Made by a program: the position numbers and the translations under genes. From contig NIVC01001211.1 of the NCBI GenBank assembly GCA_002269645.1, positions 1 to 64,000 on the forward strand: a stretch of 64,000 nt of DNA, written 5' to 3'. Under the pieces are notes generated by a model, which saw nothing but the letters and a program-made list of their open reading frames with translations, ran no database searches and was not told where the DNA came from. Shown here piece after piece: positions 1 through 28,570 of the stretch (position 1 is its first letter; the number at the start of each line of letters is the position of its first letter). Origin of the DNA: Macrostomum lignano (Eukaryota).

Positions 1-756
1 GTTGACTCCTTCGACACCTGCGCTACGATGTAAGTCCAGCGATGATTGCTTTGGCTTGTAGTTTTGGATTTGATGCGTCAATTCAAGCGTAGCGTTTTTT
101 CAAATTTGAACAAAGAGTGTTTGCTTGCGAAAATGCGAATCCAATTTTAAAAATAGTCTTCGTATTCCTCGAATCGCGCAGCTGGTGACCATCAAGGACC
201 CATACCTGGTGTGCATTTCGGATCTGATTGTTAGTCTGCACTACGCCAACGAGCTGTGCGAAGACATCTACAACGCCGACAACTACTTCAACCCGTACTT
301 TATGGCCATGGCCTTCCTCAGGACGCTTACTACCTGCCCGCGGTTGACTTCCTGTGAGTTGGCCTGAATGGCTGACGGCTTGGAGCTCAGAAGTTCTGTA
401 GTTAGTCTCAGGTTGTCAGCGAATGCATGATGGATGGAATTTTAGGAAGAGAATTTTTGAAATGTTTTTACTCTCAAACAGTTCTGAATGGAGCAGTTTT
501 TTTCTTTTAGGATTCAGAGAAGCAAAGCGAACGGCGTCATGAGCATGATCACTGGCAAGTACATCCCCAGACTGCCGAGTGCGGCTCCGCCGTCAGCGCG
601 GCTGCTGAGGCTGCGGCCATCCCCCTGGAGGGCGTTGGCGGTGCCTACATCGTCAGTCTAGCATTCTACGTGTGCGGCGCGCGCGTCATCCTGCTCGTGG
701 AGCTTTTCTGGGTGTTCAAACTAAGGAACGAGCCGCTGGATTTTCCGGGTTTTTAA
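1..756 (+). CDS. iGluR/IR-like receptor copy 0, 3' part only (S2 lobe, M4, short tail); three apparent -1 frameshifts
   Basis: Exon pieces (VDSFDTCAT | LVTIKDPYLVCISDL...LCEDIYNADNYFNPYFMAMAF | IQRSKANGVMSMITGKY...PLEGVGGAYIV...PLDFPGF*) align with copy 1. One base is missing relative to the paralogs at ~28, ~317 and ~568. Confidence 0.88.
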
Positions 757-800
757 ACTCGACCATGGTACTTGTTGTCTTGAAGACTTTTGCAGCTGTC

Positions 801-933
801 TGACATTGGAGCAAGTGACTCAGTTGCTGACATTGGAGCAAGTGACTCAGTTGCTGACATTGGAGCAAGTGACTCAGTTGCTGACATTGGAGCAAGTGAC
901 TCAGTTGCTGACATTGGAGCAAGTGACTCAGTT
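801..933. repeat. 27-bp tandem repeat x5 just downstream of the copy 0 stop
   Basis: Unit ctgacattggagcaagtgactcagttg. Confidence 0.95.
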
Positions 934-1656
934 TTAAAAAATACGAGTAAAATACTCAGTTGAACTGCAACGATGCTCCTACCAAACTACTCCTACCGAA
1001 ATATCAATGAATTTGCTGAGCTCTTTTTATTTGATAGCAAAATCCGGTCTGACTTGATGACGGGTGCGATATGCTATTTTATCCCACGCCCCGTAGCTTT
1101 CTACATCAAATACATCAAGTGAGGGTCATCGCAAGTTTTCGTTGCTACCAAGACCGATGTTTACGAACATTTGGCAATCAACATCTGCTAATTGATAATT
1201 GGTAATTGATTTTAAAGTTCCAAGTAAACGTCCGTCCAAAGCGTGGTTTCTCAGCAGTGTAAGGTTTCAATCGGATTCAAGCATTCGATTGGTGCATTGA
1301 TTAATTATAGAATGGTCAGGCATGAAGTCTCAAATTTGAAACATGCACTGAGAGATAAAGATGCGGCGGCTGCGCATTCTCCATGCTGCAGCAGAGCTGT
1401 ACTGCTTTACCGGTATGGCATGAAGGCTGTCTTTATAGCCGATACTCGACAGCAAGCTCTGGATGCGTTCGCACAGGCTGTTACGGTATACCATGGGCGT
1501 GCGCTCACGACGCTAACTGTCCTGAGCTGATGTCGGCCAGAGACCCGGGCTGGCATATCGGCATTTGGCTGCATCTTGCGCCGACCACACCAGAAGCGCT
1601 GGAGACTCTCCTATGTGTAAGGGGCGTAGCAAGATGATCCTTCTTGCGATAACTGT

Positions 1657-2294
1657 CCTGCATCAGGTAACCGAGTGTTTGAGTGCTTGAGGCAACCCTG
1701 CATCAGGTAACCGAGTGTTTGAGTGCTTGAGGCAACCCTGCATCAGGTAACCGAGTGTTTGAGTGCTTGAGGCAACCCTGCATCCGGTAACCGAGTGTTT
1801 GAGTGCTTGAGGCAACCCTGCATCCGGTAACCGAGTGTTTGAGTGCTTGAGGCAACCCTTCATCAGGTAACCGAGCGTTTGAGTGCTTGAGGCAACCTGC
1901 ATCAGGTAACCGAGTGTTTGAGTGCTTGAGGCAACCCTGCATCAGGTAACCGAGTGTTTGAGTGCTTGAGGCAACCCTGCATCAGGTAACTGAGTGTTTG
2001 AGTGCTTGAGGCAACCCTGCATCAGGTAGCCGAGTGTTTGAGTGCTTGAGGCAACCCTGAATCAGTTAACCGAGTGTTTGAGTGCTTGAGGCAACCCTGC
2101 ATCAGGTAGCCGAGTGTTTGAGTGCTTGAGGCAACCCTGCATCCGTTAACCGAGTGTTTGAGTGCTTGAGGCAACCCTGCATCCGGTAACCGAGTGTTTG
2201 AGTGCTTGAGGCAACCTGCATCAGGTAGCCGAGTGTTTGAGTGCTTGAGGCAACCCTGCATCAGGTAGCCGAGTGTTTGAGTGCTTGAGGCAAA
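1657..2294. repeat. 40-bp minisatellite, ~16 copies
   Basis: Unit ccctgcatcaggtaaccgagtgtttgagtgcttgaggcaa. Confidence 0.97.
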
Positions 2295-3086
2295 CGGTAA
2301 ATTTTCTGGAGGACAAATTTGACGAATAAATCAAAGTTTTAATTCTAAACTGTAGGCCGTTAGATTCTGTCCCCAAGCTGCTGTAATCTCTCCTTCGTGC
2401 TCTGCTGGGGAGAATGAGCCGTCTACAGTACCTTGCTTATACTTGAATTGTTCGAGCAACCGGGCCAATCCAAGCCATTCAGTTTTGTCTGAATTTGCTT
2501 TAAAAATGCCAAGTTTTCTACAACTGCGTTGGACTTAGCTACTTTGAAGCTGTGTTGAAAAACAACAGCCTATGACTCAAATGTTAAAAATAGTTCTTTG
2601 TTTGCGATGCGAACTCCTAATAATTATAAAGCAGAAGCGTTTTCTTCTTCGATTTAGATTTTTTAGGTTAATCCCCCAGAGAAGAATTTTGACCATTGAA
2701 CGAACCGCTCAGCACTCACTGAAGTCCATCCAAGAAAATTTTCATTGTCAAACGATTTCGCTTTTGTTCGATGTATCTACATTAATTGGCGCATCGCAAA
2801 AATAACTTTTTAATGGTATTTCTTTTGGCCTTCATTTACCAGGCAGAATTCTTAGCCACACCATGACGAAACAAATCAAGAAATTTCGTTAGCAAAAGAA
2901 GCTGCTGAACAAGTCAAGATTAAAAACACAGACTGCAGGGCAGAATGGATGCGCACTATTATACCTTTTTGCTATTGAATTCGCCACTTTAGCGTTTGAT
3001 TTTGTCCATTGATCGAACATACTAATACATGGAATAAGATCGTGTGCCACTAAAAAGGGGCACTGCGTTTAATTTCAGCAGCAGTA

Positions 3087-3450
3087 GCCATGAATAGTTC
3101 CTTAGATAGCACATGAGCCATGGATAGTTCCTTAGATAGCACATGAGCCATGAATAGTTCCTTAGATAGCACATGAGCCATGAATAGTTCCTTAGATAGC
3201 ACATGAGCCATGAATAGTTCCTTAGATAGCACATGAGCCATGAATAGTTCCTTAGATAGCACATGAGCCATGAATAGTTCCTTAGATAGCACATGAGCCA
3301 TGGATAGTTCCTTAGATAGCACATGAGCCATGAATAGTTCCTTAGATAGCACATGAGCCATGGATAGTTCCTTAGATAGCACATGAGCCATGAATAGTTC
3401 CTTAGATAGCACATGAGCCATGAATAGTTCCTTAGATAGCACATGAGTCA
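3087..3450. repeat. 30-bp minisatellite x12
   Basis: Unit gccatgaatagttccttagatagcacatga. Confidence 0.97.
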
Positions 3451-4548
3451 TAGGCGAAAGTTAAGGCAGTTTTGCCGAAATCCATTTCTAGTCTCTTCAT
3501 TTCTCACATTGGTTTGCCCATAGAGAAGCCTATTTTGTTTCCCCCAAAAGCCCCATTTGAAGTTACACCCCCAGATTTGTTTCTTTGGCTTGTTCGCCTC
3601 GGCCTAGAAACGCATCCTCAGCCATTCTTTACGCCATAGACAGCAAATCTGGGGGGGGGGGGGTTTATTATATTTGAACCAAGTGTGGCTCACACTGCGG
3701 TTTAAATGAATGGCTTGACGAAGTTAGTCGCAAACGCTGATGTGACTAATTGAATCGAAAAGGGTGCATCAAAAATCTGTAATTAACCTGTAATTAAAGT
3801 AAACCTAGGTAGAAATCCGGCTTCAATAAGAATTATTCTCAACTTTAAAAGCAAAAACAGCCACAGATGAGCAATGAAGCACAATCTAGCCAAAGAATGG
3901 ATAGATTTATTTATAACCGAGCTTTATTGACGTGCGAAGGGAAAGCTGAGAAAATATTGACTTCCGGCCATTAGAAAGCTGGAGGTAGAGTCAGAAAACT
4001 TTTATAACTGATTGAGTAAAGCAAACAAGTACCTCATCATAAAAAACGGGCTAGGGCTGTGGGAGATCAATAACTATCCATCGGAAGTCTTCTTCGATTG
4101 CTATTCAACTCTCGAAGCCTCATTATCTTCACGGAAATCAGATATGAAGGTGAGCTGTGAGCAGATTATTGATCCATAGACGGAGCAGCGGCGCTAATGA
4201 CCTGCTGAATTCAATAGAAAAGCTGAGCCCAGCAGCTCGGCGTTGCGAAGCGATGTGACTTCGAGACAGGGAATATTGACTGACAGCTCAGGTTCTATGG
4301 GGCTTAGCAAAGTCTAAGTGACGAATCAATGTAAGCTTGCACCAATCCGATAATCGGGTCATTTTGATTCTCGCAAATAAGAAGCAATCAAATTTGGAAT
4401 TATCACAAACGCTTGACTCAACCGGCCACAGCTTCGCCAATCACGGATAAACATTGGCGCATATTTAAGCGAGAGGATTTTGCGGGGAGGCTGACCAAGT
4501 TTTGTTTTCCGGCTACAGAGTCCCCCGTCCTTCAGTCCAGCCAGTGAG

Positions 4549-7500
4549 ATGACCGCTTGGCACGCCAGCTTCCGAGCTGTCGCCGCGCCGCTCTGCGCTC
4601 TCCTCGCGCTGTCCACCTGCGCAGGAGCCGTCAAACTGGCGGTGGTCGCTCAGAACGGCAGCATTGGAGACTTGGCCGTGGGCCGAGCCATCGACCTGCT
4701 CATCAACAACTACTGGAAGCTGACGGCATTCAAGACAAACCCCATGACGCACGTCTTTGTTCAGGCCAGCGATGCTGTCGAGGCTATGCGAACTGGTTGG
4801 TCTTATTACTAATAAGCTTTTCAGATGAGGCGTTGTGGTTCTGTCGCTCGGATAAGGAGATAACCTTGTAGCTTATCTCCTTAATCGCTCAAATCTACAA
4901 ATCTAAATATTTACTGAGCGATTAAACTAGGCCATCAGAATATTGCTAATATCATTTCCGCTTTAAAGTCAGAGACTCCTGAGGAGAGTCAGATTTCGAT
5001 ACACATTAGAAACTAAGATGCACTACACTACCAGTTGTTTTGCACCTGCCTCGGTTTTATATCTTCAACGCATTCTTTTTCGATTCAAAACTTAACAATA
5101 CAGACAGTTTAGCTACAAGCGTAATTCAAGACACATAAGTCTAGACACTTCCATAAATGCCAGTTTAAAACATAATCCAAACCGAGCAAAACGATTTGTC
5201 ACACTACAAGTAGCATGTCTAGCAACGTACGAGTATGGTCAATAAATCTGTCACTGTCACCAAGCCACAGGCAAACAAAATTTGCATAGGTGCAGTTTTC
5301 TATGAAGACTGAAAAACAAATTCCAGTGTGCAACACACCCGGCCTGCACGGAGTAGTCGCCGTGGGCTCCTGCGCCTTCGTGACCGACGTTCTGGCCGTC
5401 TCCACCTCAATCAGCGTGCGGCAGTCGCTGTCTTTCGCGACCTCTGCTTCATCAACAATACCAATCGTAATGATATTTATCAATCTTTGTCTTTATGACA
5501 TGTGCTCCATGAAACAGTCAGTTAAAGAGTTTGCATTCCTCACAATTTTGCAGCCGTGACTCTAATCTCGAACCCGGACGTCGGAAGTTTCCTGGAAGCT
5601 GCTGCGACAATCGTGAGTCGGCTCGAGCAAAAGGCCGTCGTTGTCTTTTACGATAAGTATCAAGGTAAGTCACAAAGGTGCACGTACAGCTTTGCAGTGT
5701 GAGTCTCACAAGCTCTCTAATCTGATTGCAGATCACCGTCTTCTGGAGAAGCTGCAGCAATTGCTATCGGATAAAAGCATCCCCAGCCTGACTTTCCAAA
5801 TCGATGACTGCAAGCAACCTGACCAGCATACTGAGAAACGTCGTTTGGAAGCGTTATCGCAACACATTGGTTCTGTGCACGCCTGAAAATGTCGACGCCG
5901 TTTTACGAGAGGTGCGAATTCATAATTGTTTTTGGCACACTTTATACCTATCCTGGCATTCACTAAGAGCATGTTAATTCATTAGAGCCTTTCTCAACAC
6001 AGGCTCGGAACACGGGCACACTGAAACTCAACTACTTCTGGACAGTGATCGACACGGGAGTTCGACTTGTGTCCATCGAGGACCTGCTCCCTACAAACGA
6101 GTCTGCAAACATTCTTGTGATCCGAGAGTCGCCCATAGACTTGAAAACGGCCTCAGCCGGTTGCACCTCACAGCTCAAGGCCGTGTTTCCGGACTGCCAA
6201 ATGAGCAAATACTCGTAAGCTTTTATTTACACACTTCTGCAATAGATTCTAGGCGCTGTCACCAGCCCCAGACTCTGATCATGACTGTAGATGCTGGAGA
6301 TGAAGGCAGTAGAGGCCGTGCTGTCGTTCGCCAGCGCTACGCAGAGCCTACTGGACAGTTCCGGTCTTCCTGCCAGCAACGCGTCGTGTCGGCCGTTGCA
6401 GCCGTGGTCGGCGGGTCCCGCACTGGCTGCGCAGCTGAAGCAGGTACGGATCGTACCGAAACAGGTGCTCATGGATGATGTCCTCTTTCTCAGTCTGCTC
6501 AGTCGAAACCGTTCACCTTTGTAGCTGCGACAGCCGCTGTCAGCTGGGAGCAGCTGGACACCCAGCGACTACTTTCTGGAGGTGCAGGCGACGTTCCACG
6601 ACGAGTTCTCCGACCCGGTCCGGTTCGTCAACAGCGGCCGTTTCTTTGTAGGGAACGGCTCTTTAGAGGTCAGCTTCCGCTACAGAGGTCGGAGCCTAAT
6701 CTTCCCCAACACGTTTATCGACTTTAAGAACAAGACTATTCGGATTTGCGCTGTCGCGGTAGGTGGAAGAGCAAAGAAATGAAAAATTTCGGTTATCTCT
6801 TTAGTCCTAAAATAGTTTTTCATTTTCAGTCGAAGCCCTACACCATGTACTCCGGCGGGTTAGTGGGCAATGCTTCTGGCATTACAGCCGATTTGGCTGC
6901 GTTCTTTTCGAAGCATCTCAACTTTACGTACGATTGATTTACTTTAAATAAATGCTGGGGCTTTTGTCTAGACATCAAATAATTTAGTTAGAGAGTTAAA
7001 CATTAATTTTTCAGCTACTCGATCTTTACGCCACCGGACAACCAGTTTGGCGCCCCGTCTCCTGGCTCTCCGTACTTTACAGGCTGCATCGGTATGGTGC
7101 AGAAAGGCGTGAGTAGCCCAGACTAACCAATTATTTCGACAAGCTTGTCATTCTGAAATGTTCCTCAAATCACATTTAGGAGGCCGACTTCGCCACACCA
7201 TTCGCCATCACGACAATCCGATCGAAGGTGATCGACTATTCAGAAGAATTCCTTTTCTCCTCAAACACCATCCTGGTGAAAAGGCCTATGGCCGAGTCCA
7301 AGCTGTGGAATGTGTTTGCGCCGCTCTCCTGGGACTCCTGGACTCTCATTGTGGCCATGTTCCTGGCCGTACCGCTCCTTATCTACGGGTTAGCTCGGCT
7401 GAGTCCATTCACTGGCTGGAACTTGAACTTGCCCTTCGCTTTTGCTGACGAGGTCTGGCTCAAGGAGTACATCTGGTCGACAGTGGGCAGCTTCCTGCAG

Positions 7501-8882
7501 CAGGGCCAGGACTTTTATCCGTTTGCCATGAGCCCTCGGACAGTATTGGCTTTCTGGTGGATGCTCACCGTTATCATTTTTGCTACCTACACTGGTGAGT
7601 CGGCCTTCCGGTCACTGTCTCTACACTTTTGAGATGTTTTATAGACTTTCAAAATCGGAGTTTGACAATTTTTACAAGCAAGTGTGTTTTATGGCGTAGA
7701 TTAACTGCTCGAGTCAAAACTCAGGCAAAATATAATAGAACTTGCTTAGCTATTTTTTTATTGTTTCTGATTGCTTGTAACTTGCGTTTTTTGCGATCAT
7801 AAGAACCGCTCTTCGGCACTGCTCAGGGGACCTCACGGCCAAGCTGGCAGTGACTGTAGCCAAGTACCCAATCCAGAGCTTGGACGATCTCATCTCCAAA
7901 CCGCACTACAAGGCCATGCTGCCCAGAGGCACCAACATTTACGCTGCTGTGCTGAGCGCCACAGAGGGGCCGCTGCTGCAACTGCGCAAGCAATGGATGG
8001 TGGTTGACTCCTTCGACACCTGCGCTACCAATGTAATTACATATAACTGATGAGGATTAAGAGTTAGACTTAGGCAAGGAAGGTACTTGTACTCAATTTT
8101 TTCTGATCTACATTTGCAAAATATACCAACCCAACTTCAGTTGGTGAGGATGCCGGACCCATACCTGGTGTGCATATCGGACCTCAGCATCAGTTTGTTC
8201 TACGCTAACGAGCTCTGCAGTGAGATCTACAACGCAGAGAACTACTTTAACACATATTACCTGGCTATGGCCTTCCCGCAGGATGCATACTACCTGCCTG
8301 CCTTTGACTTTCTGTGAGTGGGAACGAGGGATCAGTAATGTGTGGATGCGAGCTGTGAACAAGTATCCCCATGCACTCGAAAATTACTGCAATTATTCTT
8401 TTACTCTAAATTAATAGGTCTCTTGCAAACTTTAAACCTCAAACCTCGAATTTTTAAATCATTATTTGTATCATTTAAAAATTTGAACGTACTTTATGTA
8501 CCATAAAATTGACAGTTTTGCCTGAAACAGAAGTTCTGCCTTCTAGTGAGACTGCATCTGCAAGTGCTTCGTACTGTAAATTCTACAATAATTCGTATTC
8601 GTTTTTTGCCAAGTCTCCTTTCAAACTATTCTTCTCAGGATTCAGAGAAGCAAAGCGAACGGCGTCATGAGCATGATCACTGGCAAGTACATCCCACAGA
8701 CTGCCGAGTGCGGCTCCGCCGTCAGCGCAGCTGCTGAGGCTGCGGCCATCCCCCTGGAGGGCGTTGGTGGTGCCTACATCGTCAGTCTGAGCCTCTACGT
8801 GTGCGGCGGCCTCATCCTGTTGATTGAGCTGCTCTGGGTGTTGCTGTTGAAGAAGGAGTCGCTGGATTTTCCGGGTTTTTGA
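4549..8882 (+). CDS. iGluR/IR-like receptor copy 1 (signal peptide, ATD, S1, M1-pore-M3, S2, M4), multi-exon; apparent frameshifts in the ATD
   Basis: Signal peptide MTAWHASFRAVAAPLCALLALSTCAG. S1: PPDNQFGAP...GCIGMVQKG/EADFATPFAITTIRSKVIDYS. Pore: WSTVGSFLQQG. M3: FWWMLTVIIFATYTGDLTAKL. M4: PLEGVGGAYIV. Introns are GT-AG and phase-matched to copies 2/3. Frame breaks at ~5419, ~5809 and ~6215. Confidence 0.92.
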
Positions 8883-9784: not shown

Positions 9785-10067
9785 GCTTGTCTCTGCGTGC
9801 TTGTCTCTGCGTGCTTGTCTCTGCGTGCTTGTCTCTGCGTGCTTGTCTCTGCGTGCTTGTCTCTGCGTGCTTGTCTCTGCGTGCTTGTCTCTGCGTGCTT
9901 GTCTCTGCGTGCTTGTCTCTGCGTGCTTGTCTCTGCGTGCTTGTCTCTGCGTGCTTGTCTCTGCGTGCTTGTCTCTGCGTGCTTGTCTCTGCGTGCTTGT
10001 CTCTGCGTGCTTGTCTCTGCGTGCTTGTCTCTGCGTGCTTGTCTCTGCGTGCTTGTCTCTGCGTGCT
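9785..10067. repeat. 14-bp tandem repeat x20
   Basis: Unit gcttgtctctgcgt. Confidence 0.97.
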
Positions 10068-10747: not shown

Positions 10748-12840
10748 AACCTTTCCATTTTTACTTAATGAGACTGCAGTTGAATAACCAGCCTCTGATC
10801 GATCGGAAACATCTGATACCAAAACCGGCTCCAGTTCAGCAAGATCTCAATAAATAGCTCCAGTGTCCCACTCCGGCAGCGGCTCGCGGCTCTCACACAC
10901 GCGATCTTTAAGTCAGTCATGTGGCACGAGCTGCGAACGCTGCTGCTCCTGCTGGCCCTGCACGCCTGCAGCGGGTCATCCGTGCGCCTGGCTGTTGTGA
11001 GCGAAGCCGGAAGTCTCGCGGACAGTTCGGTCATCACCACAGCGGTGGACAAGCTGGTCAACGGAAACTGGAGGTATCCGGCATTCAAGACCAGTCCGAT
11101 GTCGCTGGAGCTGCTGCCGACTGCGGACTCAGTGGAGGCTGCGCAGAGAGGTAAAAACAGCTTGCGATACAAATGTATTGTAGAATTCTAAGAAAGAAAA
11201 TTATGTACTCGTACTTTGGTGACAATCAATAGCTAGCTGATTAGGTTCAACGACGACTTGCTTGCTTACCCGGAAAATCTCTTCTGAAACTTCAGTGTGT
11301 CGATCGACAGGTCTCAACGGCTTGGTCGTCGTCGGCTCTTGTCAGTTCGTCTCGGATGTGCTCAAAATCTCTGGCTCCCTACAATTACCGACAGTCGCAG
11401 TTCTCAGAGGCCTTTGTCGGCTACCCAGTGTGCCAGGTAAAACCCTTATTACCACAACCTATCTACTGACGCACACTTGCTTACATCACAGACAAGAATG
11501 AATCGCATGTCTTTACAGACTCAGCGATCGTGTCGAGTCCACTGGCGACCGACTTCTTGAGGGCGACCGCAGAAGCAATGGACCGAGTCTCCGCTAATCT
11601 GGTCGCTGTCCTTCACGACAGACAACAGGGTGCGCATGGCTTCCTCAAGACTACTGCTCCATCTGTAAGTTGACAGCAATGCCTTCCTCAACCATGGTGG
11701 CCAACACTCGTCATTGCAGACCACTTGCTGCTTGAGCAGCTTCAGCAACTGCTCTCGGAGAAGAGAATCGCCAGCGTGATGTTTCAGTTCGACGAATCGG
11801 CCACCAATTTGACACAAATCCTGCAAAACAGCGTCAAGGCTCAGATTCGATACTGTGTGGTCGTCTGCGAGCCCGACAAGATCCCACTCGTCTTCGAGCA
11901 GGTGAGCTCAGGTACAAATTCTTTCGCGCAATCGATTAGGGCTTAATATCATTTGGTTGTCATTCCAGGCTCGGAACACAGCCACACTGCAGATCAACTA
12001 CTTCTGGACTGTGATTGACACAGGAATTTCGCCAAGAACTATCGAGACTCTGATCCCCGCGAATGAGTCTGCGAACATCCTCTTGATCCGTGAGTCGGCA
12101 GTTCTTCTCAAAGAAATGGACTGCTCTGTAGATCTCGGAGTCGTGTATCCGGACTGCCAGTTCAGCAAGCGTTCGGTGAGGAACTCGTTCCCTGCAAACT
12201 TCTTCTGCGATGGAGCTTAGGCGCTGGCGATCTATCTGCAGTAGACCCTGAATATCCCTCAGATGCTGGAGCTGAAGGCGTTGGAGGCCGTGCTGTCATT
12301 CGCCAGAGCTACACAGAGCCTGCTGGACAGCTCCGACCTCGGCCTGACCGCCAGCAACGCGTCGTGTCGGCCGCTGCAGCCGTGGTCGGCGGGTCCCGCA
12401 GTGGCTGCGCAGCTGAAGCAGGTTGGAGTTCAGTTGCCTGTCTGACTCAGATTCTTAGCGACATGTGCGATTTGTGGTTGAGTTTGCTTTACACCGGCAT
12501 ACTTAATAGCTGAATCAGAGAACAGAAAGCAAAGCTTAATTGCCCTAATAGAAGCACGGCTTCTTGTAATTAATGCTTAACCCCATATTTCCTGGCATGC
12601 CTCATAGCAGCGGCTCAGCCCAGCCAACGGAAGTGCGGGGCACCGGAGCGACTACTTCCTGGAGATGCTGGGCCTGCTCAGCAACCCGGACGCAGTCGCG
12701 GAACTCGTGCCAAGCGGCCGGTTTATCGTCGAGAACGGCAGCCTTGTAGTGACCTTCGAGTACAAGGAGCGCGAGCTGCTGTTTCCCAACACCTTCGTGG
12801 ACTTCAAGGGAGCTCGACTGCGGGTCTGCGCGCCGCCGGT
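10748..12840 (+). other. ~2.1 kb duplicated block (upstream flank plus ATD exons and introns), near-identical to 24126-26208
   Basis: Shared sequence from aacctttccatttttac to gcgccgccg|gt, with only scattered SNPs and small indels. Confidence 0.95.
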
Positions 12841-15362
12841 AAGGGCTTTCTTTTCAGCGAAATATGTAACTTTTGCCTCGTTTCTCGAATTTACTTGCAA
12901 TCAAATATCTCTTTTGGTGCAGATCTTAAATAATAATAATTGATTACCCATGCCCCAATGGTCAAGCGACAGCTCAGCCGCAGCTATTGCGCGGCGCCTC
13001 TGAATGCTGCGTACGGCTGTTCAGTCCAAGGACTCTCAATCGCTACTCACCCTCAATTATCCCAGCTAATGTTGGTACCCATTTTTCAGCTTTGTGAACT
13101 GAAGCAATGCAGAGTTATGTTTTATTGTTCATGCTCAAAGACAAATTGTTTCGAGCGGGTCGAGAATCGAATTCCCGACCTTTCAGTCATGAGTCAGACG
13201 CTCTCCCAATGGGCTACAACCCCCCTGAAGACGCTGAGGTTGTCTGATGAAGCTTAATTTTGTTTTAAATTGTGCTTGGAGTAATGAAGTAGTGTTCGAT
13301 TCATACAGTTGTGCAAACAGTAAAACGCTGGAAATGACTTAATTCATATAATGAAGCAAAACTGGCATGATTTAATTATCTTGTCTGCATGCTAAGCTGA
13401 TACTCTGCATGAACCAATCCAGTTTCCACCTTACACGGTCTACGAGAACTACACATTTGGCAGAGCTTCTGGACACTCGGTCGAAATGCTTAGCTACTTT
13501 ACCAGGCACCTCAATTTTACGTAAGCCATATTATTTTTCATCAGTCATCTCTACATGAAAATATGCTTCATTTTTTATGCCTCAATTTGAAGGTACGACC
13601 TGTTCTCTCCGCCGGATAACCAGTTCGGGGCACCTGTGGAGGGCTCACCCTACTTTACTGGCTGCATCGGCATGCTGCAGAAAAGAGTGAGCGCAGTGAA
13701 CATACGAGCGTATGTTCACTTCCAAATGAATTCAACACACTGAATGACTGAATCTGTTTCTGTCTTTCAGCAAGCGGATTTCGCGATGCTGTTCGCTACT
13801 ACTACTTTCCGCCATAAAGTAGTCGACTACTCGGATGAGTACCAGTTCTCGTCTAACACCATCCTAGTGAAAATGCCTCCACCAGAGTCCAAGCTGTGGA
13901 ATGTGTTCACGCCGCTCTCCTGGGACTCTTGGCTGCTCATTATTGCTATGTTCGTCATTGTTCCAGTCGTTATCTTCATTTTCGCCAAGCTCAGTCCCTT
14001 TAGCGCCTGGACTTTGGGCTTGCCTTATGCGTTTTCTGACGAAGTCTGGCTAAAGGAATACGTCTGGTCGGTCATTGGCAGCTTCTTGCAGCAGGGCCAG
14101 GACTTTTACCCGTTCTCGATGAGTCCTCGAACTGTCATGGCGTTCTGGTGGATGCTCACAGTAGTCATTTTTGGAGCATATACAGGTGGTTAAGCTAGGT
14201 TGTTTTATCAAATCTAATGCTTATGACTGCAGTTGATCAAATGTTAGTGCGTTTTCTATCCCTTTCCTTCAGGGGACCTCACGGCCAAGCTTGCTGTGAC
14301 GGTGGCCAAGTACCCGATCGAGAGCTTGGAGGATCTGATCGCCAGGCCGCACTACAAGGCCATGGTTGCCCAGGGCACCAACATCTACGGCTCAATCATG
14401 CTGGCGACGGAAGGTCCCTTGACTATGCTACGCAAACAGATGGAGCTTGTTGACACAATGGCCACCTGCGCCGAGACTGTGAGTTTGAGTGTCATGGTTT
14501 TAGATTGATTTACATTCGATGAAGTCAACAAAGCCTGAGGCTCTCAGTCAGGTCTGAAAAAGCACTTCACCGAACTTTCCCTCAGCTCCTCAAGCCGGAC
14601 GCGAGCCCGTACCTGGTGTGCGTCTCAGACCAGAGCAGCAATTCTTATTACGCCAGCGCATTCTGCAAGCAGGTTTACCAAGCCAAAAATTTCTTCAACT
14701 TTTACTACTTGGCTATGACGTTTCCACAGGATGTCTACTACCTTCCAGCATTTGACTTTCTGTAAGTTTCATATTCTTCATTATCCTTTAATGTTCTTGA
14801 ATATAGCTACCTTCAGCTGTTAAATTGAATTGAAGCCATCTCTACTAGACTTTGGTTATATTACATTTGGTTATATTTTATTTATTTTATATTTTGGTTA
14901 TATTTTATTACACGTATAGTGCCAGGTGAAAAAAAACTAACTGAGCTTTGCAGCCATAATAATTTTACGTTTTTTTCGGCTTCAAATCCCCACCAGCGAC
15001 AACCAAACTTCAAAACCCAGCACGACATTCCACAACCAAACCTCGAACAACAGAATAACACTCCACAACCGAACCTCGAACCAGAACATGTAAAGTCACA
15101 GCAAAAACTCGAACCCTACAGACTGCAGCGCGGCAAGGAGAGCGGCTTCGTCGATGTGGTGACTCGCAAGTTCATTCCTTCGACAAGCGATTGCAACGTC
15201 AACACGGCCGCCGCTGAGGCCGCAGCCATCCCACTGGAGGGTGTGGGTGGCGCCTACATCGTCAGTCTGTCGCTCTACCTGTGCGGCGGTGTCATCCTGC
15301 TGATCGAGCTGTTCTGGGTGGTCAGGCTGCAGAGGGACCCGCTCGATATGCCCGGATACTGA
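10919..15362 (+). CDS. iGluR/IR-like receptor copy 2, apparently intact, multi-exon
   Basis: MWHELRTLLLLLALHACSGS signal, then ATD exons. QADFAMLFATTTFRHKVVDYS; WSVIGSFLQQG; AYTGDLTAKL; ends ...DPLDMPGY*. Splice phases are consistent throughout. Confidence 0.93.
12931..13225 (-). mobile_element. tRNA-derived CORE-like SINE, copy 1 (intron of receptor copy 2)
   Basis: Homologous to 17832, 27246 and 46744. The minus strand starts with a tRNA-like head (A-box-like and B-box-like attcgattc) and ends in a taatcaatta(tta)n tail. Confidence 0.8.
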
Positions 15363-16760: not shown

Positions 16761-16894
16761 TTAGAAAGAACGCACGCAACGCGACACATGGCGGGGCAGA
16801 GGAGGGGGTTTAAAACTGGTTAATTAGTGACTAGGCAAGACCAGTCACGAACCAAAACATTTTCGGTTCTGAAACGGTACTCAGACAGTTTGAG

Positions 16895-17831: not shown

Positions 17832-18082
17832 AATGGGCAGATGTGCAACCGACAGCTCAGCCGCAGCTATTGCGTGGCGCATCTGAAGGCTGCGTACGGC
17901 TGTTCAGTCCAAGGACTGGGGATCGCCAAACACATTGTCAATTACCCCAGCTGGGCAAAATGGAAGCAATGCAGAGTGAAGTGTCTTGCTCAAGAACACA
18001 AATTGTTCCAAGTGAGATCAGGAATCGAACCCCGACCTTCAAGTCGTGAGTCCGACGCTCTGACCACTGGGCCACTCCCCTT
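17832..18082 (-). mobile_element. tRNA-derived CORE-like SINE, copy 2
   Basis: Minus strand: ggcccagtggtcagagcgtcggactcacgacttgaaggtcggggttcgattcc (A and B boxes), followed by the shared body. Confidence 0.85.
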
Positions 18083-18748: not shown

Positions 18749-21325
18749 TCAAATCTGCAGCAGCATTCGCACTTCACGGAGATACAGCCAAGTCTCGCAC
18801 CACCAGGTCATATAGCTGGTATTTGCCGTCTCCCGCACAGGAAAAATCCCGTTCGGGTTGGAGTGGTTGCAGTCTCGAAACCACCAGCCTCCTTTTCCAT
18901 ACCTGTTTGTGCATGACCCTGGGTTGCTTTCGTCATTGTCCCTGTCTATTGTGGAAAACCGCATTCCTGAGTTTTTCTGCAGTTCATCATAGTTCAAACT
19001 GGACCTGCTCTTCAGCATCTCTCGGTACGTCATCCGATACCCAGTGCTGGCATCTCCCACCTGGAATCCCGCGTACTCCGCATGCAGCTCAGAGCCGTTC
19101 CAGAGCTTCATCTCCAATCTGAAAGTGACGCCGCCCTGGCTCAGCAAGTGGATGGTGGAGAGGCCTGTGGGAAGAAATTAAGCGGCAGAGGCTGGGTCAC
19201 TTCTGCTTGGTCAGGCATTTTAGTGACACACCTGTAAAACAGACGAAAACGAACATAAATTGTATGGCTACTGTCCTTCGAATCGGAGCTTTCACTGGAT
19301 CACAGGAGAATGTAAATTGCCTTGGTTGGTTTAAGTTCGTGATCGTATTTACATGTTGAATAGGGTAGTAAACCTTGCTGCATTCTCAGCGGCTGGCTGC
19401 AACGAGGCGGGATGGGAAAGAGAGGAAGGGAGAAGGATCAGGTTGCCAGGCGCCAGTGCAGCCAAATTTATCAGCTTTGTTATGAAGCAGACGCTTTATC
19501 TCTGTTAGCAGAGCTGCGAACGCGAAGCGGCCGCTCACCGATCCAGAAGTCAGTGCCGTCACCGAAGCCAGTCTCGTACTCAGTCCAGCCTCGTTGGAAA
19601 CTCACTCTGCCGGTGAGTCGCTGCTGAATCTTTACGAAGCAGCGGCCGTCTCGCTGAACTTGAAGCGCGTAAGAAGAGTCAGCGGCGGCGCATGACTGCG
19701 GACTCGAGCAGCTCGCACTTGCCGACGCCTTCATTCTCCATGATAAAGTTGTCTGGACCGACTCGGATCGGCACTGGTCAGCAACCAGAGACGTCACCCG
19801 CCACCTCAGGTGTCGCCACAAATCCGCGGGCTCATTCAGCACCGCCGATCTGAAACTCAGCGGAGTTTTTAGATTGCAATACAACACGAAAATACGCGTA
19901 ACCTCTGAAAAAAATAATTAAAGCAATTCTTGAGGGCCACAAAAAAGGTCAACCATTTCAGTTTTCTTAAGACGAATGCTTTTCACTGTTATATTCCAAA
20001 AAAAATTCATTTGAAATGAAATGAACTGGTTGACATGAATTTTGAATTTGAAAAGACCCATTGAAACGGGGTCCTTAGGGTCTGTGAGACATCAGGGCAA
20101 CTGGGCAAATAAAACACTCAGAATTTTAAAGAACTGTCGTGAGGTAAAGTGAATTCTGTTTCTGTTTCTCCAAGCAATTATCAAACCTGAGTTCGTCGCA
20201 CAGCCCCGAGCTTCCGCAGAGCAGCCGCAGCTGAGCGGACTTCCAGTCTGTCGACACCATCAGCGGACCGACCTCGAACCGAGAACTCAACGAGCTCACC
20301 GATCTCTCAGCAGTCCACAGCCGCATAAAATCGACCGATCGAGGCGACAGGTCGGCCAGCTGAGTCCTCACAGCATCGCGTGTGGCCTCATCTTGCAGCA
20401 CCACATCCAGCTTCAGGTAGTGCATGTCTCGGCTATAGTCATACCTGACTGACTCGCTGCTCAAGCTGGAGATGTTGTGGCACAGCAGAGGCTCGATGAG
20501 GAAGTGGCCCTTCATGTCGAGTCTCTGGTGCACTCGGACTGAGCAGTTCTCGAGATTGACGGAGCGGATGAACCGAAGCTGTCGGCAATTCGACACATTT
20601 GCAAATCTTTGTCTGCCGAATTCCAAGTCGAAGAAGCTGCTGTTTTGCAGCAGGACGTGTCTCTGAACTTCATAGCAAGAGCCGTTCGAAATGATAGAAG
20701 CTGACAGCCTAACTTTTTCAAGGGCCTCGCCGGGCGAACTTCTAAAGTTGGCATTCTGCTCTGGCTGGATTTCTAATGAACTCAGACTTTGCATTCGAGG
20801 CACATTTGCCAGTCTCAAGTTGCTTGCAGCTTGGCACACACTGCTGCGGGCCCTCTTCTCAATTCGCAGTCTCAGGGTGGCGATTGGTTCATCTGGAGTC
20901 CACAGGATGTCAGAAACCCGGATTAATGAGCTGAAGTCGGCTGAGACGCTGATGTTGGTGACCGTGGCGAAGCTCACAGACCTCGGTGACAGATGCCGCA
21001 GTTGACGCTGAGCATCTGCGAGCATCCCAGCATCCCTCATCAATACAGGAACGCTGAAGTACAGCTGCTGGGTGATGAAGTCGAATCGGGGAACAATGCC
21101 TCTCAGGCTGTCCGTCACGCACATGAGCGGCTCGACTGCCAAGTGCGGACCGTCGCTCGCTCCCGTGTCGTGCACGAACAGCGCGCAGCCGTTCACGCTG
21201 AGCTGCGCCACGAAGCGGAGCCGCGGAGAGTCAGCGGGAGCGCACTGGGAGACCTGGCCGGCTGCCAGCGAGCAGAGCAGCAAAGCAACAAAAATGAAGC
21301 CCTTTTTCCAATTCCAGTCACGCAT
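18749..21325 (-). CDS. Secreted fibrinogen-related protein (FReD) with a large unrecognised N-terminal region; exons 21325-20187, 19849-19539, 19164-18749 (~620 aa)
   Basis: Signal peptide FIFVALLLCSLAAG. Fibrinogen C motifs: IQQR..G.VSFQRGWTEYETGFG..DFWIGL..IH, FSTIDRDND, C.....GGWWF..C..SNPNG. Phase-matched junctions: CTC AG|gt..ag|A TCG and ATC G|gt..ag|GC CTC. Confidence 0.85.
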
Positions 21326-21859: not shown

Positions 21860-22020
21860 CGATTACTGGGGGAATGGCTTACTGGGGGAATTGCTGAGAT
21901 CTCAAGTCTTGGGGGGAATTGCTAAGATGTTAAGGCTAAGGTTAGAAGCTACATGTAGTTTATTTAAAAAATTTTAGTACATTCTTTGTTTGCTCCCCAA
22001 CGGGGGGCGTAAATTGCTAG
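21860..22020. repeat. Degenerate interspersed repeat (ggggaattgctgagatgtcaagg motif), related to 23200-23750
   Basis: Recurrent gaattgct(g/a)agat and taggg/ttagg motifs. Confidence 0.55.
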
Positions 22021-23200: not shown

Positions 23201-23750
23201 ACCTGGAGATTGTGGAATGCGGCATTTCGAACATGGAGGGAATCGCTAAGGTGTCAAACGTTCATAGTCGAATTGCTGAATTCTTGGGGGCTCAGAGGGA
23301 ATTCATGAAATGTCAAGGTTCATTGAGAATTGCCGAAATGCTGTGACTCGGCAGGGTTAGTCATAGGTTTACGCTAGGGTTCAACCATAAAAGAATCATA
23401 TGAAATTGCCAACATGCCCGAGCTCATAGGGGTTGGGAGTGAAATGCTGAGTTGTTAAGGCTCATGTGTGGAATCGCTAAGATTTCAAAAGCTCAAGGGC
23501 AAATTGGTGAAATTCTTAGGCTCAGGGGAATTGTTGAAACTCGGCAGGGTTAGGGCTAGGATTATTGGTTCAATTATGAAATAATCGCCCCTGTCAACCA
23601 TAAAAGATTCATGGGGGTTTGCTTAGATGTCAAAGCTCTTACAGGGGAGTGCTTAAGATTAAAGGCTCGTGGGTGATTGCTGAATGCTGTGGCTCATTGG
23701 AGAATTGCTGAGATGTCAAGGCGAGAATCGCTGAAATTGTGACTTGTGTT
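23200..23750. repeat. Degenerate tandem-like repeat (gaattgctgagatgtcaaggctc units)
   Basis: Imperfect recurring units; the same motif occurs at 21860-22020. Confidence 0.6.
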
Positions 23751-24296
23751 GCTCAGATTATATGAACCAAAGCTCACAAAGGATCTGATATCTTAGGCTA
23801 GATAGCTGGTGCTTTTTGCATTCAAAATCGTTTGCCCCTTGGTAGCTCGTACTTAACACTGGTTAATCAACAAGGTCATATCCTACTTGAAGTTCTTTCA
23901 AACATTTTATTTCTGTTTTTGTTGACTCCCCAATGATTAATAGGTTAACTATTACTTTGCGATGGATATCTAATTTCATTAGTGCATCGGCAGATATTGC
24001 AAAAAAAGGCAAAGCGCAAAGCCCATTATCGATAATTGGACAGCTCAGGTGGCAAACTGGCTGAAATTCCAGCCGGGCGCTGCCCCATCGCCAAGTCAAT
24101 GCAGCATCACATTCTGATTGAAGGTAACCTTTCCATTTTTACTTAATGAGACTGCAGTTGAATAACCAGCCTCTGATCGATCGGAAACATCTGATACCAA
24201 AACCGGATTCAGTTCAGTAAGATCTCAATAAATAGCTCCAGTGTCCCACTCCGGCAGCGGCTCGCGGCTCTCACACACGCGATCTTTAAGTCAGTC

Positions 24297-27200
24297 ATGT
24301 GGCACGAGCTGCGAACGCTGCTGCTCCTGCTGGCCCTGCACGCCTGCAGCGGGTCATCCGTGCGCCTGGCTGTTGTAAGCGAAGCCGGAAGTCTCGCGGA
24401 CAGTTCGATCATCACCACAGCGGTGGACAAGCTGGTCAACGGAAACTGGAGGTATCCGGCATTCAAGACCAGTCCGATGTCGCTGGAGCTGCTGCCGACT
24501 GCGGACTCAGTGGAGGCTGCGCAGAGAGGTAAAAACAGCTTGAGATACAAATTTATTGTAGAATTCTAAGAAAGAAAATTATGTACTTTGGTGACAATCA
24601 ATAGCTGATTAGGTTCAACGACGACTTGCTTGCTTACCCGGAAAATCTCTTCTGAAACTTCAGTGTGTCGATCGACAGGTCTCAACGGCTTGGTCGTCGT
24701 CGGCTCTTGTCAGTTCGTCTCGGATGTGCTCAAAATCTCTGGCTCCCTACAATTACCGACAGTCGCAGTTCTCAGAGGCCTTTGTCGGCTACCCAGTGTG
24801 CCAGGTAAAACCCTTATTACCACAACCTATCTACTGACGCACACTTGCTTACATCACAGACAAGAATGAATCGCATATCTTTACAGACTCAGCGATCGTG
24901 TCGAGTCCACTGGCGACCGACTTCTTGAGGGCGACCGCAGAAGCAATGGACCGAGTCTCCGCTAATCTGGTCGCTGTCCTTCACGACAGACAACAGGGTG
25001 CGCATGGCTTCCTAAAGACTACTGCTCCATCTGTAAGTTGACAGCAATGCCTTCCTCAACCATGGTGGCTAACACTCGTCATTGCAGACCACTTGCTGCT
25101 TGAGCAGCTTCAGCAACTGCTCTCGGAGAAGAGAATCGCCAGCGTGATGTTTCAGTTCGACGAATGGGCCACCAATTTGACCCAAATCCTGCAAAACAGC
25201 GTCAAGGCTCAGATTCGATACTGTGTGGTCGTCTGCGAGCCCGACAAGATCCCACTCGTCTTCGAGCAGGTGAGCTCAGGTACAAATTCTTTCGCGCAAT
25301 CGATTAGGGCTTAATATCATTTGGTTGTCATTCCAGGCTCGGAACACAGCCACACTGCAGATCAACTACTTCTGGACTGTGATTGACACAGGAATTTCGC
25401 CAAGAACTATCGAGACTCTGATCCCCGCGAATGAGTCTGCGAACATCCTCTTGATCCGTGAGTCGACAGTTCTTCTCAAAGAAATGGACTGCTCTGTAGA
25501 TCTCGGAGTCGTGTATCCGGACTGCCAGTTCAGCAAGCGTTCGGTGAGGAACTCGTTCCCTGCAAACTTCTTCTGCGATGGAGCTTAGGCGCTGGCGATC
25601 TATCTGCAGTAGACCCTGAACATCCCTCAGATGCTGGAGCTGAAGGCGTTGGAGGCCGTGCTGTCATTCGCCAGAGCTACACAGAGCCTGCTGGACAGCT
25701 CCGACCTCGGCCTGACCGCCAGCAACGCGTCGTGTCGGCCGCTGCAGCCGTGGTCGGCGGGTCCCGCAGTGGCTGCGCAGCTGAAGCAGGTTGGAGTTCA
25801 GTTGCCTGTCTGACTCAGATTCTTAGCGACATGTGCAATTTGTGGTTGAGTTTGCTTTACACCGGCATACTTAATAGCTGAATCAGAGAACAGAAAGCAA
25901 AGCTTAATTGCCCTAATAGAAGCACGGCTTCTTGTAATTAATGCTTAACCCCATATTTCCTGGCATGCCTCATAGCAGCGGCTCAGCCCAGCCAACGGAA
26001 GTGCGGGGCACCGGAGCGACTACTTCCTGGAGATGCTGGGCCTGCTCAGCAACCCGGACGCAGTCGCGGAACTCGTGCCAAGCGGCCGGTTTATCGTCGA
26101 GAACGGCAGCCTTGTAGTGACCTTCGAGTACAAGGAGCGCGAGCTGCTGTTTCCCAACACCTTCGTGGACTTCAAGGGAGCTCGACTGCGGGTCTGCGCG
26201 CCGCCGGTTAGTCACGAATAGCTGAAGACTTGATGTTTTACTTCATAATAAGAAATTGGGATTACGCTCGTAAAATGGTATGAAGGGCATTGCTTGTTTC
26301 TTCAGATAAGAAAAAGTAACAAATAATTATTTCGGGACGTTATTTATGTTAGTGATAAAGTAGTTGTAACATTTTAATAATAAACCTTATCTAATAACGA
26401 GTCCCATTTTCCCAACCAGTTCCCGCCTTTCACCAGGTACAGCAACTACACCTTTGGCACGGCTTCTGGCCACTCGGTGGATATGGTCAACTATTATGCC
26501 TCGCATCTGAATTTTTCGTATGTCTGAATCAGATTTGCATTGAGCCTCAACTCATTCTCCGTTGCATTATAGAGTACAGAAACTTATTGACCTTCATTGC
26601 GGCAGGTATGACATTTTCTCCCCACCGGATATCCAGTTCGGAGCGCCGGTCGAAGGATCGCCCTACTTCAGCGGTTGCATCGGCATGCTGCAGAGAGGAG
26701 TGAGGACAGCGCCTGCTTAATGATAATTTATGTTATAAAGTACAGTTTGCTCGAATTGACAGTCTGAAACTCTGTTCTCGTTGCCTTCTTCCCAGGAAGC
26801 CGAGTTTGCCATGCCGTTTGCCATCACCAACATTCGCTACCAAGTGATCGACTACTCAGAGGACTACATGTTCTCCGCCAACACCATTCTGGTGAAGCGG
26901 CCGCCATCAGAGTCCAAGCTGTGGAATGTGTTCACGCCGCTGGCCTGGGACTCCTGGCTGCTCATTCTCGGCATGCTCGTCTTCGTTCCCATCATCGTGT
27001 TTGTGCTCGCCAGCTGCAATCCGTTCTCCGGGTGGAATCTACGCATCTCGTACGCGTTTGCCGATGAGGTGTGGCTGAAGGAGTACATCTGGTCAGTGAT
27101 TGGCAGCTTCCTGCAGCAGGGCCAGGACTTCTATCCCTTCGCTATGAGCCCCCGCACTGTTCTGGCCTTCTGGTGGATGCTCACCGTTATTCTCTATGGC

Positions 27201-28570
27201 GCATACACAGGTGAGGCTGACGTCTGCATTGTCTTTTCAATACGTAATATTAATTGATTACACCTGCCTGGGCAGGTGTGCAACCGACAGCTCAGCCGCA
27301 GCTATTGCGCGGCGCATCTGAAGGCTGAGTACAGCTGTTCAGTTCAAGGACTGAGGGATTGCCACACACTTTCAATTACCCCAGCTAATGCTGGCACCCA
27401 TTTTACAGCTGGGTGAACTGAAGCATTGCAGAGTTAAGCGTCTAGCTCAAGGACACAAATTGTTCCGGGTGGATCGAGAATCGAACCCCTGACCTTTCGG
27501 TCGTGAGTCCGATGTTCTAGCCATTAGACTATAACCCCCTAGTAGGCTACAACCCAAAGTTTTGTCTTGATAGCCGTGAGTTATCGGCGTCATTTTACTG
27601 TTGTTTTTCTCTTACCGGACAGGGGACCTCACGGCCAAGCTGGCTGTGACGGTGGCCGAGTACCCGATCCAAAGCTTGGAAGACCTGGTCTCCATGCCGC
27701 ACTACAAGGCCATGGTTGCCCGGGGCACCAACATCTACGCGACTATCATGCTGGCAACTGACGGACCCATGGCTTTGCTGCGCAGGCAGATGGTTGTCGT
27801 AGACACAATGACTACCTGCGCTGAAACCGTGAGCTGATGCCCTGGTTCTTTGTTGGCTGTTCTGTTGTATAAAATGCATGGGGTCCTAATTAGCTATAGA
27901 TATCATTGATGCCGACCATTCCAGCTGCTGATTAAGGACGCCGACCCGTACATGGTGTGCATCTCGGACAAGAGCAGCAACTCGTTCTATGCCAGCGCAT
28001 TCTGCAGCCAGGTGTACCAGGCCACCAGCCTTTTTAACTATTACTACCAGGCGATGACGTTTCCCAGAGATGCCTATTACCTGCCGGCGTTCGACTTGCT
28101 GTACGTTTTCTTCATTCCGCATTCCTTCTGGTTTTTATGCAATGCAAACAAACTGTACACATTCTGTGCGAAGTGTGTCGTTGCAGAGAATGATACGCCG
28201 AAATTAAAACTTTGATCTGAAGTGCAAAGCGGGGGTTTATTGGGGCTGATACCTCCAAGAAGGCCAGAAAAGCGAAAACCTGTGAATTCTCAAAACCATT
28301 AAAGTAGCTGACTCCTCCCAACTCTGCAGTCTTCAGCGCGGCAAGGAGAGCGGCGTCGTGGATGTTGTGACTCGGAAGTACGTCCCGCAGAGCAACGACT
28401 GCGGCGGCAGCAACGCGGCTGCTCAGGCGGCGGCCATATCGCTGGAGGGTGTCGGAGGCGCCTACATCATCTGCCTGGGCCTGTACGTGTGCGGTGGGCT
28501 CGTCCTGCTGGTGGAGCTGCTCTGGGTGATGTGGCTCGGGAAGCAGCCACTGGACATGCCAGGATACTGA
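24297..28570 (+). CDS. iGluR/IR-like receptor copy 3, apparently intact, multi-exon
   Basis: ATD near-identical to copy 2. Distinct LBD (EAEFAMPFAITNIRYQVIDYS); WSVIGSFLQQG; AYTGDLTAKL; ends ...QPLDMPGY*. Confidence 0.93.
27246..27540 (-). mobile_element. tRNA-derived CORE-like SINE, copy 3 (intron of receptor copy 3)
   Basis: cccattttacagctgggtgaactgaagcattgcagagttaagcgtctagctcaaggacaca followed by gagaatcgaacccctgacc. Confidence 0.85.

Follow-up and report, generated by a model that had tools for sequence, protein, structure and literature searches.

A cluster of four paralogous genes of the ionotropic glutamate receptor (iGluR) type was found within positions 1-28570 of a 64,000-nt stretch of the Macrostomum lignano genome (assembly GCA_002269645.1, contig NIVC01001211.1, positions 1 to 64,000; hereafter the window). 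The genes, named g1 to g4, lie head to tail on the + strand. They are probably best explained as a tandem array of M. lignano paralogs encoding divergent iGluR subunits that bear an amino-terminal domain (ATD) and are not of the NMDA type. Two of them, g3 and g4, have uninterrupted open reading frames (ORFs) of 829 codons with canonical GT-AG introns at conserved phases. An earlier note on this DNA, made without database searches, had counted at least four paralogs sharing the pore and an unusual M3 segment; only three copies of M3 and pore are present in the window, g1 being a C-terminal fragment.

Gene models and domain architecture

An all-versus-all comparison of the open segments on the + strand gave 13 conserved blocks in three full units, together with a C-terminal fragment at the start of the window. 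The positions and phases of 12 introns are common to all copies, and the gene consists of 13 exons. The g3 model was built by hand from GT-AG junctions and was reproduced exactly by our own protein-to-genome aligner, which handles phased introns and frameshifts; the same aligner was then used on g1, g2 and g4 (Table 1). A junction between exons 11 and 12 with weak donors, which added 16 residues and produced spurious frameshifts in g2 and g4, was tried and dropped, as the DNA shows another donor. In all four copies this junction is formed by a phase-0 donor, GTGAGT/GTAATT, which is conserved, and by a YAG acceptor, in agreement with the UniProt model of g4. A tblastn search with g3 against both strands of the whole window found no copy beyond g1-g4.

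Public sequences correspond to these genes. The g4 protein is 95% identical over its whole length to the M. lignano entry A0A1I8JJF5 (P0004) of UniProt, the differences being three mis-spliced ATD stretches, and 99.6% identical to another, A0A1I8FU98. The g3 protein is 99.5% identical to a UniProt fragment (P0177) over residues 292-483. In addition to its three mis-spliced segments, A0A1I8JJF5 has a spurious N-terminal extension of about 349 aa.

The channel and ligand-binding layers were recognized by Pfam. Lig_chan (PF00060) matched at 6.7e-23 and 81.6 bits (cut-off 30.8), covering a channel domain of M1, pore loop, M3 and M4 in which pore loop and M3 align with those of GluA, GluK and GluD. 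The S1/S2 clamshell ligand-binding domain (LBD) was matched by Lig_chan-Glu_bd (PF10613) at 4.1e-12 and 46.7 bits (cut-off 30). With a single sequence as query, ANF_receptor (PF01094) reached 20.8 bits (E 2e-4), below its cut-off of 25.4; Pfam was therefore not relied on for the ATD. A profile of 14 family members aligned over the full length of GluK1 and GluK2, from the signal peptide (residue 4 on) to M4, at about 290 bits, and scored about 260 bits against AMPA receptors and GluD1. The 60 best PDB matches were all kainate, AMPA or delta receptors, with no NMDA receptor among them.

An AlphaFold2 model was calculated with the UniProt sequence of g4 as query and a 58-row alignment. Its mean predicted local distance difference test (pLDDT) score was 85.8 and its predicted template modelling (pTM) score 0.68; pLDDT exceeded 90 through the LBD, and the ATD was folded confidently. 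The main low-confidence segment, residues 160-174, coincides with a mis-spliced stretch of the UniProt sequence. Foldseek matched the model to full-length GluD1, GluD2, GluA2 and GluK2 over about 850 columns (E about 1e-37). The ATD is taken as real because the family profile and Foldseek align the proteins at full length and the AlphaFold2 model folds this domain confidently. By profile and predicted structure, the three-layer architecture of ATD, LBD and transmembrane domain (TMD) is thus established, and the retained ATD described in the earlier note, which had named structure prediction as one check, is borne out. The very short tail reported there was also found: about 12 residues follow M4, ending in PLD[FM]PG[FY], with the stop after FPGF in g1 and g2 and after MPGY in g3 and g4.

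Pore, gate and ligand pocket

Residues were called from an 88-sequence MAFFT alignment and are given in GluA2 numbering. The pore motif GSFLQQG, noted earlier as Q-type, was present at three sites on the + strand in a six-frame motif search. In full the pore reads FLQQGQDFYPFA, against FMQQGCDISPRS in AMPA receptors, with Q at the Q/R site and Asp at +4; a WW motif also lies in this region.

A phase-1 intron following YT divides the M3 gate motif [TA]YTGDLTAK, which is thus complete only in the spliced product. In the genomic sequence, DLTAK occurs three times, each time just after a stop-containing stretch; the spliced products read ATYTGDLTAK in g2 and GAYTGDLTAK in g3 and g4. Compared with the canonical SYTANLAAF, the motif [AT]YTGDLTAKLAVTVAKYPIESLEDL keeps Y2, T3, L6 and A8 (the Lurcher alanine) and carries the changes A4 to G, N5 to D, A7 to T and F9 to K, so that the non-canonical gate of the earlier note is confirmed with four of nine residues kept. 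Position 7 is a bundle-crossing position in GluA2, and the Asp at position 5 and the Lys at position 9 are one helical turn apart. The linker between M3 and S2 has the canonical length (PIESLEDL versus PIESAEDL).

In the ligand pocket, the S1 arginine is kept in g2, g3 and g4 within FA[IT]T[TN][FI]R. Alignment of ADFA-PFAITTIR with AVAPLTITLVR shows R485 retained and T480 replaced by A, after a one-residue deletion just before the S1 proline (Leu in g3). A pairwise HMMER alignment to GluD1 had instead put a T at the T480 position; this was rejected, since PFA in g2 and g4 against PFT or PLT in the multiple alignment places the deletion before the proline. Y450 is replaced by H in g3 and g4 and by I in g2. 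The GST site has become G653-T654-N655 (GTN), and E705 is D within C[IV]SD (CISD in g1 and g4, CVSD in g3). The retained S1 arginine and the substitutions at T480, the GST site and E705 agree with the manual alignment of the earlier note.

On the favoured reading, g3 and g4 would form cation channels as tetramers, which would open when a small extracellular ligand binds in the clamshell. Because of the Q at the Q/R site and the Asp at +4, these channels would probably be Ca2+-permeable and polyamine-sensitive. R485 together with an acidic residue at 705 is the published rule for amino-acid ligands (PMC8437780). Since both are kept, an amino-acid-like agonist is the best guess: the ligand would probably be an alpha-amino acid, with R485 holding the alpha-carboxylate and D705 the alpha-amino group. 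Side-chain selectivity would probably differ from that of AMPA and kainate receptors because T480, Y450 and T655 have changed to A, H/I and N. The altered gate (G4, D5, T7 and K9, with Lurcher Ala 8 kept) should change gating and the electrostatics of the upper pore, and may either stabilize or destabilize the closed gate.

Relatives and phylogenetic position

A profile of the three exon-10 translations was searched against 1.84 billion representative proteins and returned 1122 at E ≤ 1e-3. Twelve matched at E ≤ 1e-30, of which 11 were M. lignano entries named by domain only and one (P0014) was an ENA metagenome protein. The next tier held proteins of a monogenean (Cichlidogyrus) and of cestodes (Spirometra, Sparganum); after the flatworms came proteins of molluscs, annelids, nemerteans and hemichordates that carry automatic 'delta-like' names. 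In one M. lignano model (P0158) two adjacent paralogs are fused, which suggests that further tandem arrays may exist elsewhere in the genome.

A neighbour-joining (NJ) tree was calculated from Kimura distances over 424 LBD and TMD columns, with a plant GLR as outgroup and 100 bootstrap replicates. It included AMPA, kainate, delta/phi-like and IR25a/8a sequences, with no NMDA, Epsilon or Lambda references, and the ingroup branches among these sets. Genes g2-g4 grouped with a bootstrap of 95, the subfamily with a YTGD gate with 94 and the flatworm clade with 94. The flatworm clade joined a clade of transcriptome proteins at 88, and all of these joined a mollusc, annelid and nemertean group to form a spiralian clade at 97. 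IR25a/8a formed a clade at 99, and AMPA plus kainate at 82. By this tree, the cluster is an M. lignano expansion nested within a flatworm clade, itself nested within the spiralian clade, and the lineage-specific family proposed in the earlier note is supported both by the tree and by the exon-10 search. That note had also named phylogeny as a check: the clade stands apart from AMPA/kainate, delta/phi-like and IR25a/8a, and its deep position varies between replicates (48% with IR25a/8a, 4% with delta/phi-like). The proteins are iGluRs by every architectural test and, by their position in the separate spiralian clade, are not orthologs of AMPA, kainate or delta receptors.

Kainate, AMPA and delta receptors (AKDF; PMC6307864) are the best PDB matches to the cluster proteins by both sequence and structure, and share with them the ATD-LBD-TMD topology, Q at the Q/R site, the +4 Asp, R485, an acidic 705 and the M3-S2 linker length. 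They differ in the gate, at T480, Y450 and T655, and in the length of the tail, and are only about 21-24% identical over LBD and TMD. The cluster genes could be conventional excitatory transmitter receptors, for glutamate or another classical amino acid, which have drifted in a fast-evolving lineage. The family profile scores highest against kainate receptors, the Q/R-site Q, the +4 Asp, the WW motif and the linker length are conserved, G653, R485 and the acidic 705 are kept, and Asn 655 could still hydrogen-bond the gamma-carboxylate. However, the genes lie outside the AMPA, kainate and delta clades, three pocket positions and gate positions 4, 5, 7 and 9 are changed, and a tail of some 12 residues could hardly accommodate motifs for synaptic scaffolding. 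A drifted transmitter receptor is thus considered unlikely.

The best single-sequence PDB match was GluD1 (1e-32, 116 bits), and GluD1 and GluD2 were the best Foldseek matches, as would be expected of delta-like orphan subunits that act mainly in adhesion, scaffolding or modulation through the ATD and pass little ligand-gated current themselves, if any. D at 705 occurs in GluD and GluN1, a Thr stands beside the Lurcher alanine, and the ATD module has been homogenized between g3 and g4 (see below) as if under its own constraint. The margin of GluD1 over GluA4 (3e-32, 115 bits) is tiny, however, and the family profile ranks kainate receptors first. The genes have a well-conserved pore loop, they fall outside the delta/phi-like clade, and the spiralian clade grouped with delta/phi-like sequences in only 4% of replicates. 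A delta-like role is accordingly improbable.

Among the closest known sequences outside the subfamily are uncharacterized flatworm proteins in the same clade: Mlig020788 of M. lignano (PAA64923.1) and those of Cichlidogyrus casuarinus (KAL3310748.1) and Spirometra (VZI22347.1). They share a QG[QN][DE]FYP-type pore, D705 and a short tail with the cluster proteins, but are only 26-28% identical to g3 and keep T480 (PFT, PIT, PMT). Their gates, YTADMIGY, YQADMTAF and YQAELVAF, show that an acidic residue at position 5 is general in flatworms. GTN is shared only with Mlig020788, the site being GSY in Spirometra and GTI in Cichlidogyrus. Mollusc, annelid and nemertean proteins named 'delta-1-like' or 'glutamate receptor 1-like', such as those of the scallop Pecten (XP_033737179.1) and the abalone Haliotis (XP_067672970.1), belong to the spiralian clade and could represent the Phi or Zeta classes (Zeng et al., 2021; PMC8437780). 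These differ in having a canonical gate, T480 and N or E at the Q/R site, and share R485, G-[TS]-N and D705, features that by this distribution are ancestral for the wider spiralian clade and not special to the cluster.

Only one subfamily has Gly at gate 4 and Lys or His at gate 9 (YTGDLTAK, YTGDLTAH, YTGDMTAH), T480A and the deletion before the proline. A relative about 50% identical to g3 is encoded on a 2.7-kb ENA metagenome scaffold (ERZ23498939, scaffold_9940; L001:1-2689). Its intron positions are those of g3, including the phase-1 intron after YT, and its gate is YTGDLTAH; it retains T480 (STFT) and has S-S-N at the GST site. This gate-bearing relative may come from another organism, or it may be a divergent M. 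lignano paralog. In the searchable literature, no account of this clade or of another flatworm clade of iGluRs or ionotropic receptors (IRs) was found. A paper on IRs of S. mansoni reports one IR25a-derived match only (PMC5080760), and class-defining iGluR surveys did not cover flatworms, terms for which are absent from both texts (PMC6307864; PMC12226733). The proteins are already in UniProt as uncharacterized models.

Chemosensory IRs offer a further comparison. By a residue criterion said to go back to Benton in 2009 and Croset in 2010, an IR has reportedly lost at least one of the S1 arginine, the S2 threonine at 655 and the S2 acidic residue (D/E) at 705; in the cluster proteins T655 is N, and R and D are kept. 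Like protostome IRs (Croset et al., 2010; PMC2924276), the cluster is a lineage-specific, tandemly duplicating offshoot. The genes might therefore be flatworm counterparts of chemosensory IRs, that is, fast-diversifying environmental sensors in sensory neurons, possibly with an IR25a-like co-receptor. The expansion comprises many M. lignano clusters, the tandem layout and two disrupted copies look like birth and death, and the fused P0158 model suggests another tandem pair. Gly at gate 4 also occurs in several matches with Y[ST]GNL gates among the top 150 (P0061, P0108, P0141; organisms not looked up), and species-specific IRs have been described in molluscs and annelids (Croset et al., 2010; PMC2924276). 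On the other hand, the ATD is absent or unrecognizable in all IRs except IR25a and IR8a (PMC2924276), whereas here it is fully present and well folded. Throughout the clade R485 and D705 are kept, and the ratio of nonsynonymous to synonymous substitutions (dN/dS; see below) indicates ordinary constraint. IR25a and IR8a do keep an ATD, but form a clade of their own. The chemosensory explanation is therefore regarded as possible but rather doubtful. The 'IR-like' character proposed in the earlier note is supported loosely: the resemblance at gate 4 and the loss of T655 stood, the retained ATD did not fit, and sister placement beside IR25a/8a had a bootstrap of 48%.

A related idea, which we consider quite unlikely, is that flatworms independently evolved an IR-like sensory repertoire of their own from an ATD-bearing spiralian iGluR. 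The rebuilt gate could then be tonic or leak-prone, sensitive to pH or ions, or opened by a non-amino-acid ligand, and the ATD, exchanged as a module between paralogs by gene conversion, could set the assembly partners.

History of the copies, surroundings and implications

Half of the copies are disrupted as assembled. In g2, three frameshifts all lie in the ATD, so that the assembled reading stops at codon 130, and the LBD/TMD half is intact. In g1, which is cut by the window edge, frameshifts occur in exons 12 and 13 and a one-base deletion precedes the exon 11 donor; the single-base deletions were seen relative to g2 by blastn. The coding sequence of g3 and g4, about 5 kb, is free of indels, whereas that of g1 and g2, about 3 kb, has five or six, and the g2 sites are not homopolymers. 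For these reasons g1 and g2 are read as probable pseudogenes. Between paralogs, dN/dS is 0.17-0.30 at dS of about 1, and 0.17 in the LBD/TMD half; by these ratios the family, including g3 and g4, has evolved under purifying selection. The frameshifts in g1 and g2 would also fit a cluster that is decaying as a whole, in which every copy is a non-functional or unexpressed relic and the odd motifs reflect relaxed constraint. Such general decay is highly improbable, given the intact g3 and g4 frames and intron phases, the low dN/dS of the LBD/TMD half, and a YTGDLTA[KH] gate and QQGQDFYPFA pore kept across paralogs that are 40-50% identical and on the metagenome scaffold.

In their 5' halves, g3 and g4 have a tract of 2093 bp in common, introns counted, with 98.8% identity, whereas the remainder of the two genes is about 76% identical. 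The tract begins 171 bp before the ATG, takes in exons 1-7 with their introns, that is, the whole ATD, and ends at the boundary of exon 7 and intron 7, which is also that of ATD and LBD. Because dS between g3 and g4 is 0.006 inside the tract and 0.97 outside, the ATD-coding half was homogenized recently; this points to a conversion event limited to the ATD module, or to the 5' half having been replaced. Both composites are matched by independent UniProt fragments (P0177 for g3, across the junction; P0004 and P0005 for g4).

Several points weigh against the interpretation as divergent, ATD-bearing iGluR subunits. The tree is NJ only, on 424 columns and with the reference set given above, and long-branch effects are possible. 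IR25a/8a comes out as sister of the spiralian clade, with a bootstrap of only 48%. A gate with four of nine SYTANLAAF residues does not guarantee a conducting channel, and stands exactly at the minimum for inclusion used by Ramos-Vicente et al. (2018; PMC6307864). Channels gated by glutamate, glycine, GABA or aspartate occur interspersed within clades, and ligand selectivity is poorly predicted by the GST and LE motifs (PMC13648236); the earlier suggestion that these receptors are not glutamate-gated is therefore kept as a conjecture. Lastly, two of the four copies are disrupted; assembly error, which is judged less likely than pseudogene status, would make this a matter of the assembled state only.

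The surroundings of the cluster are rich in repeats (Table 1). A repeat of about 300 bp occurs four times at 78-82% identity, with copies in intron 7 of g3 and intron 10 of g4. One of its ends resembles an antisense tRNA-derived segment (…GGGTCGAGAATCGAACCCCCGACC…), which suggests a short interspersed element (SINE)-like sequence; ARAGORN found no tRNA genes. The minisatellite load is very high. Several arrays sit in the intergenic spacers of the receptor cluster. In the second half of the window, which is GC-rich, minisatellites give rise to long spurious ORFs. Between g3 and g4 lies a single-exon ORF whose product begins with a signal peptide and seems to contain a two-fold internal repeat (…LSPRSV[SD]F… twice). 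This ORF had no Pfam match, and neither had the long ORFs of the GC-rich repeats. A gene for a claudin/PMP22-like four-pass membrane protein follows directly downstream of the cluster.

Table 1. Positions of the receptor genes, their motifs and neighbouring features in the window.
Feature	Positions	Strand	Remarks
g1	1-756	+	3' fragment; spliced alignment to g3
g1 exons	11 (end) 1-29 (29 nt); 12, 182-353; 13, 511-756	+
g1 frameshifts	~311-312; ~569-570	+	exons 12 and 13
g2	4549-8882	+	13 exons; signal peptide MTAWHASFRAVAAPLCALLALSTCAGA
g2 exons 1-7	4549-4795, 5327-5466, 5554-5664, 5732-5911, 6003-6214, 6291-6443, 6534-6758	+
g2 exons 8-13	6830-6927, 7015-7108, 7180-7594, 7827-8032, 8141-8313, 8639-8882	+
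g2 frameshifts	5419-20; 5809; 6210-11	+	ATD
g3	10919-15362	+	intact, 829 aa
g3 exons 1-7	10919-11150, 11296-11436, 11519-11629, 11720-11901, 11969-12175, 12263-12421, 12611-12838	+
g3 exons 8-13	13423-13520, 13593-13686, 13771-14185, 14273-14478, 14586-14761, 15122-15362	+
g4	24297-28570	+	intact, 829 aa
g4 exons 1-7	24297-24528, 24664-24804, 24887-24997, 25088-25269, 25337-25543, 25631-25789, 25979-26206	+
g4 exons 8-13	26420-26517, 26606-26699, 26796-27210, 27623-27828, 27925-28100, 28330-28570	+
S1 Arg motif	7201-7221 (g2), 13792-13812 (g3), 26817-26837 (g4)	+	FA[IT]T[TN][FI]R
Pore	7486-7506 (g2), 14077-14097 (g3), 27102-27122 (g4)	+	GSFLQQG
M3-splitting intron	7595-7826 (g2), 14186-14272 (g3), 27211-27622 (g4)	+	phase 1
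DLTAK	7829, 14275, 27625	+
GST site	7928-7936 (g2), 14374-14382 (g3), 27724-27732 (g4)	+	GTN
Residue 705 motif	212-223 (g1), 8171-8182 (g2), 14619-14630 (g3), 27958-27969 (g4)	+	C[IV]SD
Near-identical tract, g3 copy	10748-12840	+	partner 24126-26208
Near-identical tract, g4 copy	24126-26208	+	partner 10748-12840
~300-bp repeat	12931-13224, 17834-18055, 27245-27546, 46755-47071
Single-exon ORF	20126-21325	-	399 aa
Claudin/PMP22-like ORF	30673-31455	-	260 aa; Pfam Claudin_2, 3e-18
Minisatellites	1657-2293, 3086-3451, 9785-10067, 30208-30645, 38652-44895, 51690-53207, 56712-60891, 62331-64000
Minisatellite units	57589-60891; 42992-44895; 56712-57493; 1657-2293		33 bp x 102; 30 bp x 62; 41 bp x 19; 40 bp x 16
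AT-rich block	32-38 kb		~31% GC

Lineage-specific expansions of iGluRs with odd pockets are known from arthropods, molluscs, amphioxus and ctenophores, and for this reason the M. lignano cluster is interesting rather than surprising. In it, four positions of SYTANLAAF have changed naturally and in a conserved manner while the pore loop, the Lurcher alanine and the ATD were kept, and it would thus offer a test of how much charge the M3 bundle crossing tolerates. Its pocket, with the backbone-binding Arg and Asp kept and three side-chain contacts changed, would be another case of an iGluR whose agonist cannot be guessed from sequence (PMC13648236). M. lignano is a model organism in which transgenesis is possible, and expression and knock-down tests of these receptors would be feasible.

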